From Podarcis muralis (taxonomy: Eukaryota), in the NCBI RefSeq assembly GCF_964188315.1, contig NC_135670.1:27466001-27530000 (forward strand): DNA of 64,000 nt, given 5' to 3'. Positions within the stretch are counted from its first letter, which is position 1, and each line of letters begins with the position of its first letter. Both the position numbers and the translations under genes were made by a program. This document shows positions 9,829-48,143 of the stretch, piece after piece. The notes below the pieces were generated by a model. That model saw only the letters and a list, made by a program, of their open reading frames with translations. It was not told the DNA's origin and did no database searches.

Positions 9829-16560
<6,732 letters not shown>

Positions 16561-18557: not shown

Positions 18558-18990
18558 ATGATGGAGTGGTGCCTGTTCCTTGCCACAGTCCTGGTCTCCA
18601 TTGGTAAGAGAAACTAGTTTGAGACAGACCCAGGTCTTTCTCATCCTCTCCCAGAGTGCAGACTTTGCTACACTGAGATATAGTTCGATAAGCTGGTCCT
18701 TACCTCATTCCTTCTCAGGTCTCGGCATCCAGCAACTACAGTCCCCGAAACCCTCAGAGGCTGTTCCTCTAGGTGGGACCATCAGCATGTCTTGCACATT
18801 TGATAGCGGAAGCATCACTGATAACAACTACCCTCTCTGGATCTAGCACAGTTGGGTAAAGTGCTGTGGCTGTTGCTTTACCACACCAGCAAAAGAGCAT
18901 TCGGTGTCCCAGCCCATTTCTCTGGGTCTAGAACTGGGGATACAATGTCTTTGGCCATCACTGGGGCCTTGCAAGAAGATGAAACTGTAC
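18558..18990 (+). pseudogene. IGLV pseudogene V1
   Basis: Leader 18558-18603 (MMEWCLFLATVLVSIG/gtaaga); V exon from 18719 (QQLQSPKPSEAVPLGGTISMSC...NYPLWI*); in-frame TAG at 18844-18846; FR3 breaks off at LQEDET into a MITE end, with no YYC and no RSS. Confidence 0.9.
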
Positions 18991-19742
18991 ATTCGAAAAC
19001 CGAGGTACCTCTGTATTTGCATTCATTCATTGCATGACAACCGGCCACCTTCTTCTACCTCAGCTGTAGCAAAACATGTCCCTCCTGTATCCTGTAGCCA
19101 CGGCAGACATTGCAACCTTGCAACAGTTTGACTTCACTCCCAAAGGTGCACCCCTCCATTGTTTCCCTGGACAGAGGGATGCCAACCAGTCATTGCTTAC
19201 TACAGTGGTACCTCAGGCTAAGTACTTAATTCGTTCCGGAGGTCCGTCTTTAACCTGAAATTGTTCTTCACCTGAAGCACCACTTTAGCTAATGGGGCCT
19301 CTTGCTGCTGCTGCGGCGCCGGAACACTATTTCTGTTCTCATCCTGAAGCAAAGTTCTTAACCTGAAGCACTATTTCTGGGTTAGCGGAGTCTGTAACCT
19401 GAAGCGTATGTAACCTGAGGTACGACTGAACAATATTTTTTTCTCAAAACAACATATACAGTTATAAAAAGCATACATTATTCAAAATTAAAAAGGTATC
19501 ATTAAATGCATTCCAGGGCCTCTGAATCTGGAACAGATGAGTAAAATCTGTCTGCCTCTGGTTGATCTCTTTTCTTCAACCAGATCTCCACACACCCTCT
19601 TTATCGCAGCATATGTTTGCAGTTGTTGACATGCTATAAATTACAACTTGGAGAGGCACTCCCACCATGGCGTCCTGCCGGAAATTCTATTCCAGTGTTT
19701 ACCTTCTAAAAAAAAAGGCTTCAGGCTGTTTTTGAAGGAAAC

Positions 19743-20081
19743 ATGGCTGCTGGAGGCACTCTCGGCCAGGAAGAAATGACTTGCCCCGTTTGCCACCAAC
19801 GTTTCTTGGAGCCAGTGATTACTGACTGTGGACACAGTTTCTGCCGTGCTTGCCTCATCCAGTATTGGAGCGACTCTGATGCAGCAGGTTCTTGCCCTCA
19901 GTGCGGAAAACCTTTTAAAGAAGGCAGCTACAGGTGGAACCACGAGCTAGCAAGGCATGCAGGGGGACCCACAAAATCTAAAGAAGGGGAAGATGCGAAA
20001 AGCAAGATGGGAAGGTGTGATAAGCCAGAGGAACTCCTGGAATCCTGTGAGGGTGGTGATCGAATGGTTCGAAAGAAAAAG
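19743..20081 (+). CDS. isolated TRIM-type RING (C3HC4) exon with degenerate B-box
   Basis: CPVC-x11-CGH-SF-CRAC...CPQC; ATG in good context (AACATGG); phase-0 donor AAG/GTAGGA at 20081. No dedicated downstream exons found. Confidence 0.65.
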
Positions 20082-21828
20082 GTAGGAAACTAGGGAGGGG
20101 AGGGGAGGGAAATGAATTTGGTTTGCTTACTTAAAAAAAAGTTCAATTGATTCACATGTATCTCTTCCATAAAATTTATGTATACAAACCAGAAAGCAGT
20201 TTACAAAAATAATAAAACAATAAAGTTATCGATAAAAGCAGTTAAACAGCATTTAAAACATTCAGAAAGTAATTAAAATCTGCAATAAGCTGAAAACAGA
20301 AGCATATGCCACCCTCTGCTTGCTCATAATTTACCTGCGATGGGCCCACGCTTTACCTTGGTCTTTTAGGAACACAGAGTGACACTGTACAAGGTTATAA
20401 ATGAGACTCTCCCCTACTGGTGGACTTGGGAAATGGTTGTCACCAAATCAACTAGGGTTGCTAGGTCAGGAGCATCTCAGATCCTGAAATTTCAAGGCCC
20501 AGACCTGAGACCTAAGGGAACCCCCTGTTGATGTCATGGGGGCAGGCCCTGGAGACGGAGGTTAATTGGGAGAAGGGATTGGAGGAGGACAGTCCCCTCA
20601 CTGAGCGTCTGTGCTATGATTTGCAACTGGCTCCTGTTGCGTTTGCAAAGTAAAGGAAGGATTGGACCCTGATTAAAAATCAAGACACGAGGCTTTGACC
20701 AGCAAGGCTCTCGGAGAAAAGTGCGTCCACCACACCCCTCACCAGGCCATTTTATTAGCAAAAGAATCTTTTGCACAGTGCTCGTAAGAACCAATCATAT
20801 TTCCTCTGAGCATTTCATTAAACCCCACATGGGGAAAAAGTTATACTACAACACTAATTAGCATGCATATATTTTGGGGTAAATATGTTGAGAACTACAA
20901 AGGGGTAGTAAATAAGTTGAGAACTACAAAGGGGTGCATCTGGGAACCCCAGAGCTGAGAAATAAACATGATAAGAAGGATGGCCAGAAAGACCAGATCA
21001 CTACCACCTTCATGTGAGATCTGTTTCCTGGCTCCAAGATTAACATTTTAAGATTATATATAAGAAACTACATCAAAGAACTTGCCCACAATCTTTATGG
21101 CCCAGGATGCCTGCCTGGCGAAGCAACTGCTGTGTACTGCTGCGTACGTGACGTGAGGAGAGAGAAATGGGCAGTAGAGTCAAAAGGGCATGAAAAGGGC
21201 ACGAATATAGAATCTTATAGGATTTAATCAGAAATTATCGTCAATAATCAAACCCAATCAACACAATATCTTCATCGTGGACACAATGGCTTGATGTATA
21301 TTTTATAATTCCTCATGGTAATCCCATCTGACCACTACAGGCTCCTACTGGGCTGAGGCTTGCAAGTTAGATGCACAAAATTCTTAATTACTATTAATAA
21401 TGCATAGTAGAGGAAATTGCATACGAAAGTATGAATATTGGGGGAAATGTGCTGTAAAATGCTGGTGAATTTTCATGAGCTGCTCCTTTTTATTTATTTA
21501 ATAAATTGGCAAAGTGGTTCAGAAATGTGACAAATTGAACATAAGTTTGGGGGGGGGGGGAGAAAAACACCAGAATGCACAGATTCATTCATCCCTAATG
21601 AAGGAAGGTGAGGACAGGTGACCCCACCTAGGCCCAAAGTCACCCCCCCCCCAAAGCAGGCTCAAAGCTTCTCAAAGCTTTTCAAAAGGCATTAGCTAAG
21701 CATCTGCTCATTTGCTCTGCTGTTGCAAGGCAAACCGTTACTTTTATCAGCACAAGAGAGCTTCAAAAAGGCTACACTACATCTAGATCACACAAATGAC
21801 ACCTTGGCCTACAAAGCCTCAGCAGTGG

Positions 21829-22090: not shown

Positions 22091-22295
22091 GGTGGTATTG
22101 TATCTTTCTGGTCAATTACTCTGGTTGTGTAGAAGAACTCAGCTGTTACATTTCCATGTTGGGGGGGGGGGAGGAAATGAAGGAGTGGATGGAATTGTAC
22201 TTCTAAATCAATAACTTTACTAAGAAACATCTTATTTTTTTTATATTTGTAAGGGAACCATGATACCGAAAGGGACGTCCACACTGCTTGTAGTT

Positions 22296-25200
22296 ATGGA
22301 AGAAGACATTAAGTGCCCTATTTGCATAGACTACTTAACAGGCATTGTGACTCTAGATTGTGGCCATAACTTTTGTAAGGCCTGCATCAACCATCACTGC
22401 GATACATGGAAGGAAATAGGTCCACCGGAATGTCCTATCTGCCGAACCAAGATCCAGAAAGGGAGTTACCGGCCAAACTGGCTGCTGACCAGCATTGTAG
22501 AAAACTGCAAACGCTGCAAAGGAGCATTGTGTGACAGACACAAGGAAAAACTTCTACTGTTCTGCAAAGAAGACAGAGAATTGCTATGTTCCAAGTGTGA
22601 ACATTCGCCACAGCACAGCCAGCACTCAGTGGTTCTCCTGGAGCATATTGAACAGGTAGGAACTTGTCTAGATAAGCCCCAACCAACATTGTGTCCTCCA
22701 GATGTTATGCAATGCAGATCTCTGACCAAAAACAAAATAGGTTACAGAATGAGGGGGAAATGCAGTGCATTTATTGGTGAAAATAAAATGCAAAATTATG
22801 TTGTATTAGGGGGAAATGAGTTCCAAAAAATTTCCTGTATGGAGAGCAGTTCTGTCCATTCCACCCGCCAGTTTAGATATTTGTCCTTTAAATTTTTTTG
22901 CACTCCAGGTTCCATGGAAATCTTTGCCACTCTAATGGTGATAGGAAGGGGGCTGAATCCTGTGTTGTAGCCGTTATCCCCTGCCCAACCCCCATGGCTC
23001 AAGTTTGACAAGTGGGTAGGATCACCTGACATAATTAGGAGCTGCTAGACCCATACCAAAAGGGACGCAGGTGGCGCTGTGGGTTAAACCACAGAGCCTA
23101 GGACTTGCCGATCAGAAGGTCGGTGGTTCGAATCCCCGTGACAGGGTGAGCTCCCATTGCTCGGTCCCTGCTCCTGCCAACCTAGCAGTTCAAAAGCACG
23201 TCAAAGTGCAAGTAGATAAATAGGTACCGCTCCGGCGGGAAGGTCAACGGCGTTTCCGTGCGCTGTTCTGGTTCGCCAGAAGCGGCTTAGTCATGCTGGC
23301 CACATGACCCAGAAGCTGTACTCCTGCTCCCTCGGCCAATAAAGTGAGATGAGCGGGCAACCCCAGAGTCGGCCACGACTGGACCTAATGGTCAGGGGTC
23401 CCTTTACCTTTACTTAGACCCATACCTGAACCTCAGTTGACTCCTATCAAGTCTCTTCTCTCCAGACGTCTCCTTGAGAGGAGGATTTTACTCCTGAGGA
23501 GTCCTTACCAGTAACTGACCACTGATGGGAATGGGCTGGCTTTGTAGTGGGCACTGCCTTTCTCTAGGGCTCAGGACTCATTTGGCTTCAGTGTCAGAGG
23601 ACTAACCTTGGTTGTGAACAGCCCCTACTCAGTCTTGTCTGAGGACGCCAACTCCCTGTCCCCAGATGGAGCCTGATTCAGAACTTGGTGTAGGGCTCCC
23701 CCAGCTGGGACATAGCAAGGTGAGATTAACCCCCCGCCCTGCTTTTAGTCTGAAGTGGTACAGTCAAACCTCGGTTGTCGAATGTAATCCATTCCAGAAG
23801 ACCGTTCAACTTCCAAAATGTTTGACAACTGAGGTTCAAAGGGCTGTAGGCAAAGTCAACGGAGAAAAAATATAAAAACTCCCTGGAAGCCGTTCAGCTT
23901 CCGAAAATCATTTGAAAACCGGAGCAGTTACAGTGGTGCCCCGCAAGACGAATGCCTCACAAGACGAAAAACTCGCTAAACGAAAGGGTTTTCCGTTTTT
24001 TGAGTCGTTCTGCAAGACGAATTTCCCTATGGGCTTGCTTCGCAAGACGAAACGTCTTGCGAGTTCTTGCGAGTTTGTTTCCTTTTTCTTAAAGCCGCTA
24101 AGCCGTTAATAGCCGCTAAGCCGTTAATAGCCGCTAAGCCGTTAATAGCCGCTAAGCCGCTAATAGCCGTGCTTCGCAAGACGAAAAAACCGCAAGACGA
24201 AGAGACTCGCGGAACGGATTCATTTCGTCTTGCGAGGCACCACTGTACTTCTGGGTTTTCGGCATTCAGGAGCCGAAACATACGATAATGGAGGTGTTCG
24301 GGAACCGAGGTTTGACTGTACAAACCAATTTTTTAAAATTTTCCCCAAAAAAGAAATAAGAAATAAAATAAAAATGTACACCCCACTCCCAAGACCATTC
24401 CATTGTAACTATCCAACCTCCCAAAATTTGAACACCTCTTGCGATGGTTTGACCTTTTTCCGTTTTAACAGTAAATATTCTACAAATACCTTCCATAGCT
24501 CCTCAAAATCATCTCTCCTGCATATTCCCCGTTTTACCTGACAAGGTGAGATTCAAGACAAAGATATATACCACAAAAGCAATGAGGAACCTGCTGTGGC
24601 CCTTCTGTCACCAGATACTGATGTGGACTCCTCTTATACATAAAGTCCTAACTGCCTAACTGCCCTGAGGTTTACCAATAGGGATGCGGGTGGCGCTGTG
24701 GTCTAAACCACTGAGCCTCTTGGGCTTGCTGATCAGAAGGTTGGCAGTTTGAATCCCCACGATGGAGTGAGCTCCTGTTGCTCTGTCCCAGCTCCTGCCA
24801 ACCTAGCAGTTCGGAAGCACGCCAGTGCAAGTAGATAAATAGGTACCACTGTAGTGGGTAGGTAAATGGTGTTTCCGTGCTCTCTGGTTTCCGTCACAGT
24901 GTTCTCTTGTGCCAGAAGCAGTTTAGTCCTGCTGGCCACATGACCTGGAAAGCTGTCTGTGGACAAACGCCGGCTCCCTCGGCCTTTGACTGGACTTAAC
25001 TGTCCAGGGGTCCCTTACCTTTACCTTTAAACCTGCAGTTTACCACTGCCTGTTTACAGATTCCCTCCCACTTGAAAGCCATGACACGCTGGCAAGGGAG
25101 ACTTTGGGATGTGTCTCTTTTCAAGCATTTAATGTAACACAGAAGGGTTGTTAGAGGCCAAACTAAACAGGATGGACAAAGTACAGTTCCTGTATTATCA

Positions 25201-26059
25201 GCCATGTAAATAAAGTGATGTTAATGACAGACCTCCAACTGCTCGAGTTTACTTACAGAGAATCTGTCACAGATTGGTGAACCTTTGAGGATGCATTCAA
25301 TGATTCAGTTATTAGGCAGTGTCCCTGCTCAATTTTCCTTATAATATGCGACTGAAGTGTTCACATAACACTGCACAGGTTTTGTTGGAGGTGATCAATG
25401 TCATTTTATTATAAAACCAATAAAATATTCCACAAAAAAGGGACACATCCTAGGACAGGAGAAGGGTAGTGGAGGATATGTCCTGGGGCCAAATAGAGCT
25501 TCCCAGAGGGCTGCATTTGGCCCCTGGGCCTGCATGTCCCCACACTTGCCCCAGGACCTAGGGAATAAAGAAGAGAAGATCCCTCAAGACTGGTGAATCA
25601 TTCACTGCTTAGCTCATAATGTGGAGTTTAGGAGAATTCCCATGTTCCCTGGCCAGCAGAAGCGTCACACATCCAGGATTTTCATCTGAGCCAGAGAATA
25701 ATTTTGTGGTTCTACGTTTTCTTTCCTGAGCCTGAGAAGAAATTCACTGGTACAGTCATACCTTGGGTTGAATGTGCTTCAGGTTGAGCGCTTCCGGGTT
25801 GCACTCTGTGGCAATCCGGAAGTAATGGAGCACGCTGCTTCTGGGTTTTGCCGCTCGCGCATGCGCAGACACTCAAAATGATGTCACGCGCATGCATGGA
25901 AGTGGCAAAACGCGACCCACAGATGCGCTGTCGTGTCTTACGTTCTATTCAAACTCATTGTATGTTCTGTCCCTGTAGCTGAGACCTCATTTATCTTGTT
26001 CTCTCTTTCAGGGGATCAGAAGGAACTTGAACAGGTATGTAACTCTTTCTTGTCACATA

Positions 26060-26100
<41 letters not shown>

Positions 26101-29100
26101 CTGCAGAACAGATTCTATTTCACTGAAAACAACATGCTCTTACAAGTATGACAACAAATTCTGCTATGTACAATCAACATTGAAAGCAAGGGTGGGAAAT
26201 CTTTCTCTAATACCCTTTTAACCTTGACAACATTGATTTACCCTTACAACCTTTTACATGTAAAACATAAATTTGGAAATTGAGTAATGGGTCTGTGCCT
26301 TTGGACTCCTCTTACAATCTTGTAGTCAATTGTGCATGGTCTGAAGATCAAGAACAGGTTATTGTCTATGTCTGGATAGAACTGGAGTCCATTTTTAATC
26401 ACGACGTTGGACTGAATCTTTCAGCACTGCACTGATTTTGTGACTTCTTAGAATTCCTGAGCAGTACCAGGAAATCTCCCTCAAATGCAACCCCTGCTTT
26501 CTCCTCTGGTCAATTTCACTCTGAAGTGTGAAGCATGGGGAATGATATTGAGTTGGGGAACCTTTGGATTTCCAGATGTTCTTAGACTACAGCTGTCATC
26601 ATCTCTGACCCCTGGCAGGGCAACTGGGGCTAATAAGAGTTGGACAGAGCGATGGGTTGCTCATTCCTGGTCTAGAGGGTTCACTAGATTGAAATGTTCT
26701 TGGGAGAGAGACCTCCAGGCTCAAAATGTCAGACTGGGACTCTTATCTGTGAATGTATCTGCGGGAAATTGCAGTCAAGCATAACTAGCAAGCATAGGGC
26801 TAGTTAGTGCATGAAGGGGTTAAAACCACAGAGTTAGATTCCTACACTCAGCTAGGTCATGCTCCCTTTCCTCAGGAGAGGAAGGAAGTGAGACCTTCCC
26901 TCCCTCCCTCCCTAGCTCTCCATGCAATGTAACTGACCAAGGAGGATGTGCCTAAGCTTGTTCTCCAAGCTTAGAACACATGCTTGAAGCTACCGTATCT
27001 TTCGCTCTATAAGACGCACCTAGTTTTTAGAGGAGGAAAACAAGAAAAAAAAATATTCTGAATCAAATGTTGTTGAAGAAAGCAACGCAAAGCTTCAGCG
27101 TAAGCAACGCAAAGCCTCTTCAGCGCAATGGGAGGAACGCTCCCGCTGCCCTGAAGAGGCTTCACACGGGTATCCCAGAAGCCAGAACAACAAGAGGAAT
27201 CGCTGCGCAGCAATCCCTCTTGCTGTTCTGGCTTCAGTGATAGCTGCGCAGCCTGTATTTGCTCCATAAGACGCACACACATTTCCCCTTACTTTTTAGG
27301 AGGGAAAAGTGCATCTTACAGAGTGAAAAATACGGTATCTTGCTGTATTTTCTACACAGAACAACACATGTATCAGACTTTTGAATAGGTAAGTAAATAA
27401 TTTTAAACTTAGCAGTGTGTGGCGTGTTCAGTGAGGTCTGTTGCTTCAGCGGACTAAACAGAACTTTTAAACAGGATTAACAGTCTATTCCTATGCTGTA
27501 CTGCTGCACAAGTTGTGACTTGATTTTAAATTCTGCTGGGGCTTTCTGTGTGCTAGCCCTGTGTTTTGAATCTAGTCACCTAGTCAGTTCTTTTGTTGTT
27601 CACCCACACAAGTGAGTCCACAGGGATTCATATATTAATTCCCCCACAGCATCTTCTCTTCTTATGTTCTTACTACACATTTGTATGGGAGGGCAAGGGG
27701 ATTGTTGAGTACTGAAAGCTGTCCATCTTCCCTTCCAGGTCCAAAGATGAGGAGGAAGTGGGGCATGAGTTGGTTAATCACCCCAACAGTTGCTCACCGG
27801 AAAAAATTGCTCTGATCAAGATTACGGGAAAATGGGAAGGTATTGGGGGCAAACAGGGGAGCGGGAAAATACGTTGAACTCAGAGACTTGCTAGTGCTCA
27901 GGGGCATGGCAAGGGGTGTGTGTGGGGGGTGTGTGCGGTCCATCCTGGGTGTCATGCCTAGGGTGTGTGTGACAAAACCCGCCTCCCAGGTGGATTGGCA
28001 TGGTGGCGCTCGCACCCCCGGTGGGTGGATTTTCGTGATTGGCCAAGACCTCTGACCTGCATCAGAACGCCATCATTACAATAGGCACTCTAGACTCCCT
28101 TCTGTTATTAAGGCTAGCCAACTGATCAGTCAATTCCTGCAAAGGGGCTCCATCCAGTTGCTCCATTTGACACCCAGCTTCTAGCAAATGATGCCCAAAC
28201 TGATCCCTAATACCCAATCCATCTAGTCCTGTTCTCAACAGTAGTTGACATCTAGTCCTGTTCTCATTAGAAGCCTAGCTAGAGCATCTGCCTTGAATGC
28301 AAAAGGTTCCAGGTTCAATTCTCAGCATCTCTAGGTAGAGCTGGGGAAGAGACAACCCTGTTTGGAACTCCAGAGAACTGCTGAATAGACAAGACTGTGC
28401 TGTATGGACCAAGGTATAAGGCACCTTCCTCTGTTTCCATCCATGCACATCTCCTTCCAGGAGCGCCTTCCGGGGGTGTGGCCTGGGGAGGAGGCATGGC
28501 CTAGAGAGAACCTTGAGGACCAGTTCAAGAGGACCTTGGGTCTCAGTTCTGCACCTGTAAGATAGGTCTCTGATTAGATTGAGCTGGGCTTGTTTTTACG
28601 TTCCTCAAATCTCCACGTTCCTTCTTTCCCTCTGTCCTGCAGGAAGTATAATTCTGGATCCAAGCACAGCATATCCATACCTCATTGTGTCTGATGACCT
28701 GAAAAGCGTGAGATGGGGAGATGGAAAGCAGGACGTGCCCACGAGCCTTGAGAGGTTCCACTTTGATCCCTGTGTCCTGGGCTGCGAGAGATTTGTTTCA
28801 GGGAAACATTGGTGGGAGGTGGAGGTGGGGATGGAGGTTGAGGAGGAAGAGGCTGAGTGGGCTGTGGGGGTTGTACGAGAATCTTTCCAGAGGAATGCAA
28901 AGAGCAGCCTTAGTCCTTATTGTGGGATCTGGGCTGTGGGAAAGGAGAGGAATTCTGGCCATGGCTCATTGAGTGACTCTCTTCCCTCCTGTTGCCTCTG
29001 GGCTTTTACTTCTCCCAAGTGGACCATGTTGAGACTGGCACGTCTTCCCAGGAAGATCAAGGTGTCCCTGGATTATGAAAAGGCAGTTGTGGAGTTTTTC

Positions 29101-29211
29101 GATGCTGATTTGGACAAACCGATCTTCAAATTCTGTTCAGCCTTTTTTAACAGGGAGATGGTCATTCCCTATTTGCGGGTAGAACGTGGTGTCACCCTGA
29201 AATGCTCTTGA
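22296..29211 (+). CDS. TRIM39/TRIM27(RFP)-like E3 ligase: RING, B-box2, PRY/SPRY (B30.2); coiled-coil exons not found
   Basis: Exons 22296-22655 (RING CPIC...CGH..CKAC...CPIC; B-box CDRH...C...C..C...H..H), 26012-26034 (23 nt), 27739-27839 (101 nt), 28643-29211 (ILDPSTAYPYL...GKHWWEVEV...WAVGV). Phases 0/2/1 join in frame: 1053 nt, 350 aa. Terminal domains are certain; internal exons are a model. Confidence 0.75.
23062..23414 (+). mobile_element. Sauria/Squam1-type SINE
   Basis: TSD TAGACCCATACC. Confidence 0.92.
23761..24318. mobile_element. nested Tc1/mariner MITEs (inner 23931-24245)
   Basis: Outer TIR CAGTCAAACCTCGGTT, inner TIR CAGTGGTGCC, both with TA TSDs; inner element carries 4 x 18-bp tandem AGCCGCTAAGCCGTTAAT at 24093-24164. 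Confidence 0.87.
24681..25028 (+). mobile_element. Sauria/Squam1-type SINE
   Basis: Head and tail as above. Confidence 0.88.
26993..27335. mobile_element. Tc1/pogo-type MITE (related copy 62212-62903)
   Basis: TIR CCGTAT(C/T)TTTC..., TA TSD. Confidence 0.8.
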
Positions 29212-42215: not shown

Positions 42216-43638
42216 ATGGCCTGGACTCCTCTCTTCCTTGTCCTCTCTGTTTACTGCACTGGTTGGTAATGGGGAGCATCTGCTTTCTCTTTATGGGGGA
42301 TATGGGTTCTAGCTCAGTGGTACAGCACCTTCACAAGGTCTAGGGCTCAATCCCCAGCATCTCCTGATAAGGCTGGAAAAGGCTGCTGCTGGTGTTCGGG
42401 ATAGACCATGGGTAGTCAACATGACACCCTGAACATGTTGTTGGACTACTGCTCCTATACTTCCTGATCGCCGTCCCTTATGGCTGGGGCTGATGGAAGC
42501 TGGAGTCTAATGACATCGGGAAAGCACCCCATTGGCTGTCCCTGGGGTAGATAATACCAGGCTGGGTTTGACTNNNNNNNNNNNNNNNNNNNNNNNNNNN
42601 NNNNNNNNNNNNNNNNNNNNNNNNNNNNNNNNNNNNNNNNNNNNNNNNNNNNNNNNNNNNNNNNNNNNNNNNNNNNNNNNNNNNNNNNNNNNNNNNNNNN
42701 NNNNNNNNNNNNNNNNNNNNNNNNNNNNNNNNNNNNNNNNNNNNNNNNNNNNNNNNNCATCAACTTTTGAGAAGTGATCTGACAATATTAACCACCTGGG
42801 ACCAGTTTACCTGTGAGATCTCCTTACGCTATATATGCCCACTCAACCGCTCCGATCTGTGGAACTGGCACCATTACGGGGGCCACATAATACTCATTCT
42901 GCATTGGTAAGAAATCAATATTTTAGTGTAGCAGCCCCCACACTTGGGAATTCCCTGCCTATTGACACCCAGGCAGCAGCCTTCCCTGTATTCCCTGTGC
43001 TAAGAACCTTTTAGTTTAGACCAGCTTACTCAGGTATGTAGAATGTGGCATGTGTTTTAACGTGCCTTTAGCTTATCTCTGATTCTGATTCTGATTATTT
43101 TTTGGGGGAATGTTTTTAAGGATCATTTTGGGTCCCCCCTCATTCTTCTTGTAAACCGCTTTGAGGGGTGTTTTTAACAATCAAATGGTGTGTGTGTGTG
43201 TGAAACAATAATAATAACTACCAATAATAATAACACTGCTCTTCCACAAGTTTTTCTCTCTTTCCCCTCACCTTGATGGAACACAATTCTCGCCAGCAAT
43301 AGCCTCCCTCTTTGCTTTTCTTCTAGGGACTGTTTCTCAGTTCTCCCTAACTCAGCCACCCTCCATGTCGGCATCCCTTGGAGAAACCGCCAGCATCTCC
43401 TGTCGGAGGAGCAGCGGAAACATTGGCACCTACAATGTCGCCTGGTATGAACAGAAGCCTGGCAGTGCCCCCAAAATCCTGATCTACTGGTTTAGCACCA
43501 GAAGCTCTGGAACACCAGAGCGGTTCTCAGGTTCTGTCAACAAACCTTCCAACATGGCCACCTTAACCATCTCCAAGCTTCAACCAGAAGACGAGGCTGA
43601 TTATTACTGTTTGTCTTATGACGGCAGCTACAAGTACG
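42216..43638 (+). CDS. IGLV segment V6, intact frame, defective-looking RSS
   Basis: Leader 42216-42261 ([16 protein letters not shown]); intron spans the N gap; V exon 43327-43638 [30 protein letters not shown]...[10 protein letters not shown]. Confidence 0.87.
42574..42757. other. assembly gap (184 N) inside the V6 leader intron
   Basis: Run of N. Confidence 1.
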
Positions 43639-47642: not shown

Positions 47643-48143
47643 ATGGCCTGGGGCTTGCTCCACTTCACAGTCCTGGCATCCATCATTGGTGAGGGAGATT
47701 CATTGGGAGGATGGGGGAAAATATCTGATATGTCGCAAAGAGAGGCATATCTTGCCCTCCCAAGCCCTGCGATTTGCAAAGTATTTGGTGTTGTCCACTT
47801 TAAATTAATGTACGGATTCTTTGCCCTGCTTCCTTCCAGGTCCCAGTGTCCAGCAGTTACAGACTTTGAAGGACACAGAATTTGTGGCACCAGGTGGGAC
47901 GGTCACCATGTCTTGCAGGTTTGACAGTGGAAACATTGGTGATGGCAACTACCCTTTGTGGGTACAGAAGAAACCTGAGAGTAAACCCTGGACACTGATC
48001 TACACCACCAGCATCCGACCGTCTGACGTTCCAGCCCGTTTCTCTGGGTCTCGATCGGGGAATGTGATGTCCCTGACCATCACGGGGGCCCTTCTGGAAG
48101 CGAAGCTGCTTATTACTGTTGTGTGTGGACTGGGAGTCAGTGG
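47643..48143 (+). pseudogene. IGLV pseudogene V7 (expanded family)
   Basis: Leader 47643-47688; V exon from 47840; 1-nt deletion at about 48100 (GAAGCGAAG vs GAAGACGAAG) shifts the frame before YYC; RSS intact. Confidence 0.9.

Follow-up and report, generated by a model that had tools for sequence, protein, structure and literature searches.

A 64,000-nucleotide (nt) stretch of the Podarcis muralis genome (NC_135670.1, positions 27,466,001 to 27,530,000 of the forward strand; hereafter the window) carries on its plus strand a gene of the TRIM family that is without coiled-coil exons and that encodes two RING domains, a B-box2 and a PRY/SPRY domain. The gene is expressed, codes for protein and descends from a class IV TRIM gene; on balance, we lean towards reading its product as a monomeric ligase that does not depend on a coiled-coil and that carries its two RINGs in cis. 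TRIM proteins are regarded as being organised by their antiparallel coiled-coil, which sets the dimer, spaces the two RINGs by about 150-170 Å and ties activity to higher-order clustering. Tens of millions of years have passed since the lizard gene shed this element, and selection still maintains it. With two RINGs on one chain, it offers a natural setting in which to ask whether RINGs paired in cis can take the place of coiled-coil assembly, and it is possibly a template for compact targeted-degradation ligases.

The first-pass annotation of this DNA had described a single-RING TRIM protein of 350 amino acids (aa), starting at position 22296 and spliced from four exons. These four exons do join in frame (1050 nt, 350 codons from 22296), and both joints of the 23-nt exon were found in RNA. 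As a model of the full gene, however, the description falls short, because an upstream RING exon had been missed; when the five exons are concatenated, the whole frame comprises 477 codons with a single terminal stop and encodes two RINGs in cis (Table 1). From N- to C-terminus, the product consists of RING1, a disordered spacer, RING2 with B-box2 behind it, and, after a linker of about 41 residues, PRY/SPRY. The start at 22296 also had to be given up: the open reading frame (ORF) of RING2 and B-box2 spans 22260-22970, an acceptor AG precedes 22254, which is the true exon start, and of the two Met codons in the frame of exon 2 (22260 and 22296) the second is internal and is absent in Zootoca. 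A further ATG upstream (19668-19742) adds 22 N-terminal residues in the annotated Podarcis muralis protein. In the window the frame from this ATG meets a stop after an A-run, and the start at 19743 is therefore considered the conserved one.

RING models of Pfam matched both RING exons (zf-C3HC4_4 in the case of exon 2), and all zinc ligands are present. The two RINGs are about 30% identical and are separated by about 50 disordered residues. At their N-termini, the orthologues from Zootoca, Lacerta and Podarcis share 76-90% identity with the RING1 exon. The B-box2 was recognised by Pfam zf-B_box at 4.5e-8 and conforms exactly to the motif C-x2-H-x7-C-x7-C-x2-C-x5-H-x2-H, and in the last exon PRY was found at 9e-20 and SPRY at 8e-10. 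By sequence, the nearest solved structure is the RING-B-box of TRIM21 (5olm, 4e-18). Exon 3 was the only one of 24 AG-N23-GT/GC candidates that matched both the EIRRTLNR stretch of the orthologues and the family motif D-I/V-x-S-T-L-x-R; for exon 4, the Lacerta copy is 40% identical to the python linker. These searches were made with single exons; where a complete protein was needed, the database orthologues P0153 and P0156 were used.

Table 1. Exons and first long intron of the TRIM gene, followed by neighbouring features (positions in the window)
Feature	Positions	Strand	Details and evidence
Exon 1: RING1 (C3HC4) and a decayed, truncated B-box remnant	19743-20081	+	339 nt, phase 0, donor GT at 20082; ORF and sequence
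Exon 2: RING2 and B-box2	22254-22655	+	402 nt, phase 0 to 0, donor GT at 22656; Pfam, RNA contigs
Intron, 3356 nt	22656-26011	+	position of the two coiled-coil exons in class IV TRIM genes
Exon 3: canonical 23-nt TRIM exon, GIRRNLN-	26012-26034	+	strong polypyrimidine tract, donor GTATGT; RNA joints on both sides
Exon 4: 101-nt linker exon, shortened homologue of the L2 linker exon	27739-27839	+	orthologue linkers, RNA joint from 26034 to 27739, contig cover
Exon 5: PRY/SPRY (B30.2)	28643-29211	+	AG at 28641-28642, stop codon 29209-29211; Pfam
SMARCB1, first coding exon, head-to-head with the TRIM gene	15705-16133	-	Pfam INI1_DNA-bd 3e-5
V-lambda-like pseudogene between SMARCB1 and the TRIM gene	18708-18968	+	68% DNA identity, gapped, to the V at 47830-48090; broken frame

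To follow splicing, reads and contigs of four RNA runs were placed on positions 22230-28229. Three raw reads of run X24 cross the joint from 22655 to 26012 (GT..AG), as do one X1 contig of depth 25 and one X3 contig of depth 19. For the joint from 26034 to 27739 (GT..AG), run X24 supplied two raw reads, and X1 and X3 supplied contigs. RNA depth was 17-28 in the exons (17-25 in exon 2) versus 0-3 in unique intron, and the very deep intron bins are repeats. The strand of the stranded raw reads agrees with plus-strand RNA. X1 record 2 (830 nt) covers exon 2, the 23-nt exon and the 101-nt exon, and then extends for about 450 nt more; judged by their lengths, this record and X3 record 14 fit with continuation into the PRY/SPRY exon. 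At the other end, the match of X3 record 8 stops at 22251, 3 nt before the acceptor, and the record has 674 further letters 5' of this point. The RING1 exon ends in the same three letters, AAG, which fits with splicing of this transcript to the RING1 exon.

The joint between 20081 and 22254 is thus deduced from the break in X3 record 8. This, and the open frame from the Met codons at 22260 and 22296, would leave room for a single-RING protein of 350 aa, with the RING1 exon being alternative or untranslated and translation starting inside exon 2. We consider such a product improbable. All lacertids keep the RING1 frame open and in phase, with its eight ligands invariant out to python, and annotation pipelines join the RING1 exon in three species. 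Furthermore, the X3 contig departs from the genome at the exon 2 acceptor and continues 5', and one of the two candidate start codons, Met 22296, is not kept in Zootoca.

Coiled-coil exons were searched for in several ways. No coiled-coil match was obtained by tblastn with 152 TRIM relatives in the window and in the Zootoca locus (L001), nor with the coiled-coil-bearing python and Varanus relatives in the window, the Zootoca locus and the Lacerta agilis locus (L003). With a profile built from 15 reptile TRIM coiled-coils, the best expectation value (E) in any of these three lacertid loci was 7.6. In control searches the profile found the 231-nt exon of python, the protein of which had itself contributed to the profile, at 4e-25, and a first coiled-coil exon of the 96-nt type at 7e-6 in a Rhineura gene outside the profile. 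It was weak for the short first coiled-coil exon, with E 0.22 on the python gene, the protein of which was in the profile. This weakness is what would allow coiled-coil exons to be present but overlooked, or to be used in another isoform. We give this explanation hardly any weight, since the 231-nt exon, which is strongly detectable, is absent in three lacertid loci, and since the sole RNA joint listed from the exon 2 donor leads to the 23-nt exon in three runs. The gene is therefore one without coiled-coil exons, and tblastn, the profile and RNA that skips the whole intron agree with what the first-pass annotation had concluded for this intron. The coiled-coil of about 100 residues that follows the B-box in class IV TRIMs, encoded by two phase-0 exons, is missing. 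In the python relative the coiled-coil exons measure 84 and 231 nt, are both in phase 0 and are followed by a 23-nt exon; these two symmetric exons are exactly those absent in the lacertid gene.

Three candidate remnants were rejected. A 231-nt open segment bounded by AG and GT (27024-27254, 'FLEEENKK...') has the length of a coiled-coil exon, but was judged to be a chance occurrence: it shows no coiled-coil match, lies in the second intron, has a repeat-rich RNA depth and is skipped by RNA. An alignment of the python coiled-coil that seemed to extend into the Lacerta intron was low-identity read-through. A minus-strand, B-box-like translation at 25725-25642 (tblastn E 0.02-10) was not accepted as a relic, its cysteines being gone and Pfam empty.

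The 3356-nt intron had been described as mostly short interspersed nuclear elements (SINE) and miniature inverted-repeat transposable elements. Repeats are indeed present, among them two SINE copies (23054-23314 and 24673-24950), and there are bins of very high read depth, but about half of the intron, rather than most of it, is visibly repetitive. One intron block (25555-25752) is 96% identical to Zootoca and Lacerta agilis, compared with an intron average of about 93-94%. The following stretch of about 200 nt (25753-25950) is missing from the Zootoca and Lacerta loci and has a high RNA depth, and odd RNA joints connect it with the end of a SINE at about 23410. Lying immediately before the 23-nt exon, this stretch probably represents a repeat that entered the intron in this lineage.

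In an exhaustive protein search with the RING-B-box exon, the top match was Zootoca vivipara XP_034953967.1, a 482-aa protein annotated as 'zinc-binding protein A33-like', with the build RING, RING, B-box, EIRRTLNR, short linker and PRY/SPRY. A word search with the newer Zootoca version brought up two further lacertid orthologues. That of Podarcis muralis (A0A670JUH3; P0156) has 499 aa and a SPRY 96% identical to that of the window, and that of Lacerta agilis has 480 aa and is named 'TRIML1'. The annotated orthologues that share the build are P0156, P0157, P0153 and P0003. The gene model is already public under three unrelated names in Podarcis muralis, Lacerta agilis and Zootoca, and automatic names (A33, TRIML1, TRIM39-like) hide what seems to be a repeated loss of coiled-coil exons in reptiles. 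A search of the literature found no paper on the build of this gene, and, for natural coiled-coil-less or tandem-RING class IV TRIMs, nothing relevant except a remark on carp Trim33 and Trim36.

To place the gene among its relatives, a PRY/SPRY tree of 160 rows was analyzed. The lacertid clade had a support of 100 and was joined by Varanus at 84 and then by python at 96. The next group out consisted of lacertid paralogues of about 605 aa (P0061, P0213 and P0234, from Zootoca, Lacerta and Podarcis), which have tandem RINGs, a coiled-coil and PRY/SPRY, and no B-box2. Two RINGs in successive phase-0 exons were observed in the window, the lacertid orthologues, Varanus, python, and paralogues P0061 and P0213. 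The distance from B-box to PRY is 41-49 residues in lacertids, versus 136-164 in Varanus and python and 160-190 in ordinary relatives. Since Varanus and python have tandem RINGs and keep the coiled-coil, the tandem RING is older than the coiled-coil loss, which took place on the branch ancestral to Podarcis, Lacerta and Zootoca. The SPRY is nested among those of coiled-coil-bearing squamate RFP-like and TRIM39-like genes, and the 23-nt and linker exons are retained, which identifies the gene, as judged from these sequence characters, as the descendant of a class IV TRIM gene.

Like the class IV TRIMs (TRIM21, TRIM39, TRIM27 (RFP) and TRIM5), the lizard gene has a RING and a B-box2 in one phase-0 exon, a 23-nt exon, a linker exon and a large PRY/SPRY exon; unlike them, it is without both coiled-coil exons, its L2 linker is shortened, and it has an extra RING upstream. 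Liasis olivaceus KAM6472615.1 (P0155) and the Varanus komodoensis RFP-like X2 (P0158) belong to the same SPRY clade (support 96) and share with it the tandem RINGs, an acidic insert and other idiosyncratic SPRY motifs, but they have kept the coiled-coil exons (84 and 231 nt in python).

Coiled-coil-less forms were also found in turtles (a conserved group of 385-392 aa, at least 10 species) and in Rhineura. In Rhineura floridana (L004, 10001-20964), a separate 347-aa TRIM39-like gene (P0014) lies inside a TRIM cluster and has no coiled-coil exons by profile. The turtle 'TRIM39-like' forms (P0173 from Mauremys and P0059 from Chelydra) and P0014 resemble the lacertid gene: a B-box exon is directly followed by the motif of the 23-nt exon, the linker measures 50-70 residues, and a coiled-coil is absent. 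They differ from it in having one RING and in falling in other parts of the SPRY tree, and because of this placement the turtle and Rhineura losses are considered independent events. Loss of the two symmetric coiled-coil exons thus seems to recur in reptiles (lacertids, turtles and Rhineura). One Chelydra form with the same SPRY has a longer linker, and some of the turtle forms may be isoforms. Among mammals, RNF39 and RFPL1-4 also combine a RING and PRY/SPRY without a coiled-coil; they have one RING and no B-box, and their origin is separate.

How might such a protein work? Without an antiparallel coiled-coil, the usual rod-shaped dimer would be impossible, and the protein would most likely be a monomer. 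It would retain E3 ligase activity and find its target via PRY/SPRY, and its two RINGs on one chain would supply the RING pair that is usually needed for activation of E2~ubiquitin, possibly assisted by clustering on a multivalent target. In the AlphaFold model of P0156, RING1, RING2, B-box2 and PRY/SPRY are folded (predicted local distance difference test 80-97), residues 98-149 and 276-308 are disordered, and the longest helix, directly after the B-box, has 18 residues. The earlier proposal of a monomeric or dominant-negative TRIM holds in its first half only: a monomer is plausible, given the short helices and the disordered linker, whereas a protein that has no coiled-coil cannot act as a dominant negative by way of coiled-coil heterodimers.

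Functional parallels exist among man-made proteins. In TRIM21 the coiled-coil keeps the two RINGs of the dimer at least 150 Å apart, and RING dimerisation is needed for activity (bioRxiv 10.1101/2020.07.28.225359; PMC10105713). A TRIM21 RING-linker-RING is more active than the single RING, with B-box and coiled-coil being dispensable (bioRxiv 10.1101/2020.07.28.225359), and a RING-RING-PRYSPRY construct (R-R-PS) neutralises antibody-coated adenovirus, signals to NF-kB and rescues the TRIM21 knockout (PMC10105713). Both constructs have two RINGs on one chain and no coiled-coil, and in R-R-PS the PRY/SPRY stands behind the RINGs. The lizard protein is arranged in this way too, and we therefore read it as a monomeric ligase with its RINGs in cis. 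In the engineered protein, however, the RINGs are identical and there is no B-box, whereas the lizard RINGs have diverged from each other and a B-box follows RING2. Fast change of the RING and linker surfaces and diversity concentrated in exons would suggest an immune, pathogen-facing role. A more far-reaching proposal, which we advance tentatively and regard as possible rather than probable, is that the gene is a natural counterpart of RING-RING-PRYSPRY, i.e., a monomeric TRIM in which an in-cis RING pair does the job of the coiled-coil, acting as a self-sufficient pathogen sensor-ligase that is fast-evolving, highly polymorphic and borders the lambda V cluster.

Several observations weigh against the reading of the gene as a functional monomeric ligase. 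The AlphaFold model has a predicted template modelling score of 0.46, so the packing of the domains is not predicted. From our reading of the alignments, the positions that correspond to M10 and M72, hydrophobic dimer contacts of TRIM21, are polar in RING1, which makes a canonical RING1-RING2 bundle uncertain. The exon 1-exon 2 joint, as described above, is deduced, and the two runs of raw reads point to low expression, with depths of 0 and about 2.6 at a sampling of 12%. Finally, when the ratio of nonsynonymous to synonymous substitution rates (dN/dS) was calculated exon by exon by the Nei-Gojobori method against Zootoca and Lacerta, three genera in all, neither the RING exons (0.7-1.4) nor the whole gene (0.71-0.83) could be distinguished from 1. 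The linker had a dN/dS above 1, which was not significant.

A transcribed gene that is turning into a pseudogene, with constraint relaxed since the coiled-coil was lost, could account for such a whole-gene ratio, and also for exons that diverge at least as fast as introns (about 9-10% in coding exons and 5.8-6.6% in aligned intron, relative to Zootoca and Lacerta). Yet we find decay very unlikely. The window, the Podarcis muralis and Lacerta orthologues and two Zootoca versions all have an intact 477-codon frame. In the introns, gaps open 7 times per kb and in 78% of cases have a length not divisible by 3, and the coding exons contain in-frame indels only; under neutral drift about 8 frameshifting indels were expected, and simulated neutral substitution at d = 0.10 left a stop-free frame in 0.6% of trials (P 0.006 per pair). 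Among lacertids, all 23 zinc ligands (8 in RING1, 8 in RING2 and 7 in the B-box) are invariant, while 80 of the 245 columns vary (P = 6.5e-5), and most of the 23, including all eight of RING1, are invariant out to python. The dN/dS of PRY/SPRY is 0.39-0.55, significantly below 1 in two of three pairs (p = 0.002, 0.04 and 0.11). The intact frame, the ligands and the PRY/SPRY ratio thus show that the protein is kept by selection while its surfaces change fast. That the open frames speak against simple decay had been the view of the first-pass annotation, and for a gene that is spliced, expressed and kept in frame in three lacertid genera it is borne out.

A different use of the protein would be that of a decoy or regulator, in which the PRY/SPRY binds a target with little ligase output, and shields it from, or competes with, full-length TRIM paralogues. 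It would be in keeping with this role that PRY/SPRY is the most constrained part while the RING exons are near-neutral, and that coiled-coil loss takes away the usual route to avidity and activation. On the other hand, the invariance of all 16 RING and seven B-box ligands, and that of Ile and Pro at the E2-contact positions of RING2 (motifs C-P-I-C and C-P-x-C), would be needless for a pure binder. We consider a decoy unlikely, and retain the monomeric ligase as the preferred reading.

Variation among RNA samples was also analyzed. X3 contigs, which carry the same species label, differed from the window at 15/507 positions in exons versus 4/771 in introns (p = 0.0006); X1 contigs, also of the same label, differed at 10/514 and 11/973 positions, respectively, which is not significant. 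Counted per exon, X3 differed at 15/402 positions of exon 2 and X1 at 6/105 positions of the 101-nt exon, compared with 0.5-1.1% in introns. Seven of the 13 differences listed for exon 2 change a residue, and several of the RNA variants agree with the Podarcis muralis reference protein. The concentration of differences in exons gives no more than a hint of diversifying or balancing selection.

In all three lacertids the TRIM gene stands head-to-head with SMARCB1, upstream of the lambda V cluster. SMARCB1 is its neighbour in the Zootoca and Lacerta loci too, where the DNA is colinear and where the gene has the same build and an intact frame. The python tandem-RING gene adjoins a SCAN-KRAB zinc-finger gene and not SMARCB1. 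When the window was scanned for recombination signal sequences (RSSs) with a 23-nt spacer, consensus-like ones were found only from 31553 onward, on the plus strand, and none at the V-like stretch 18708-18968. All RSS-bearing V segments of the window are therefore 3' of the TRIM gene, as had been noted before. Being placed at the 5' border of the V cluster, the gene would survive deletional joining, and this position might, as proposed in the first-pass annotation, link its expression to B cells. Elsewhere in the window, a plus-strand ORF at 818-1201 lies in a GC-rich stretch; this short piece had no Pfam match, and we take it to resemble the N-terminus of a Derlin (DERL3-like). A run of N occupies positions 42574-42757.

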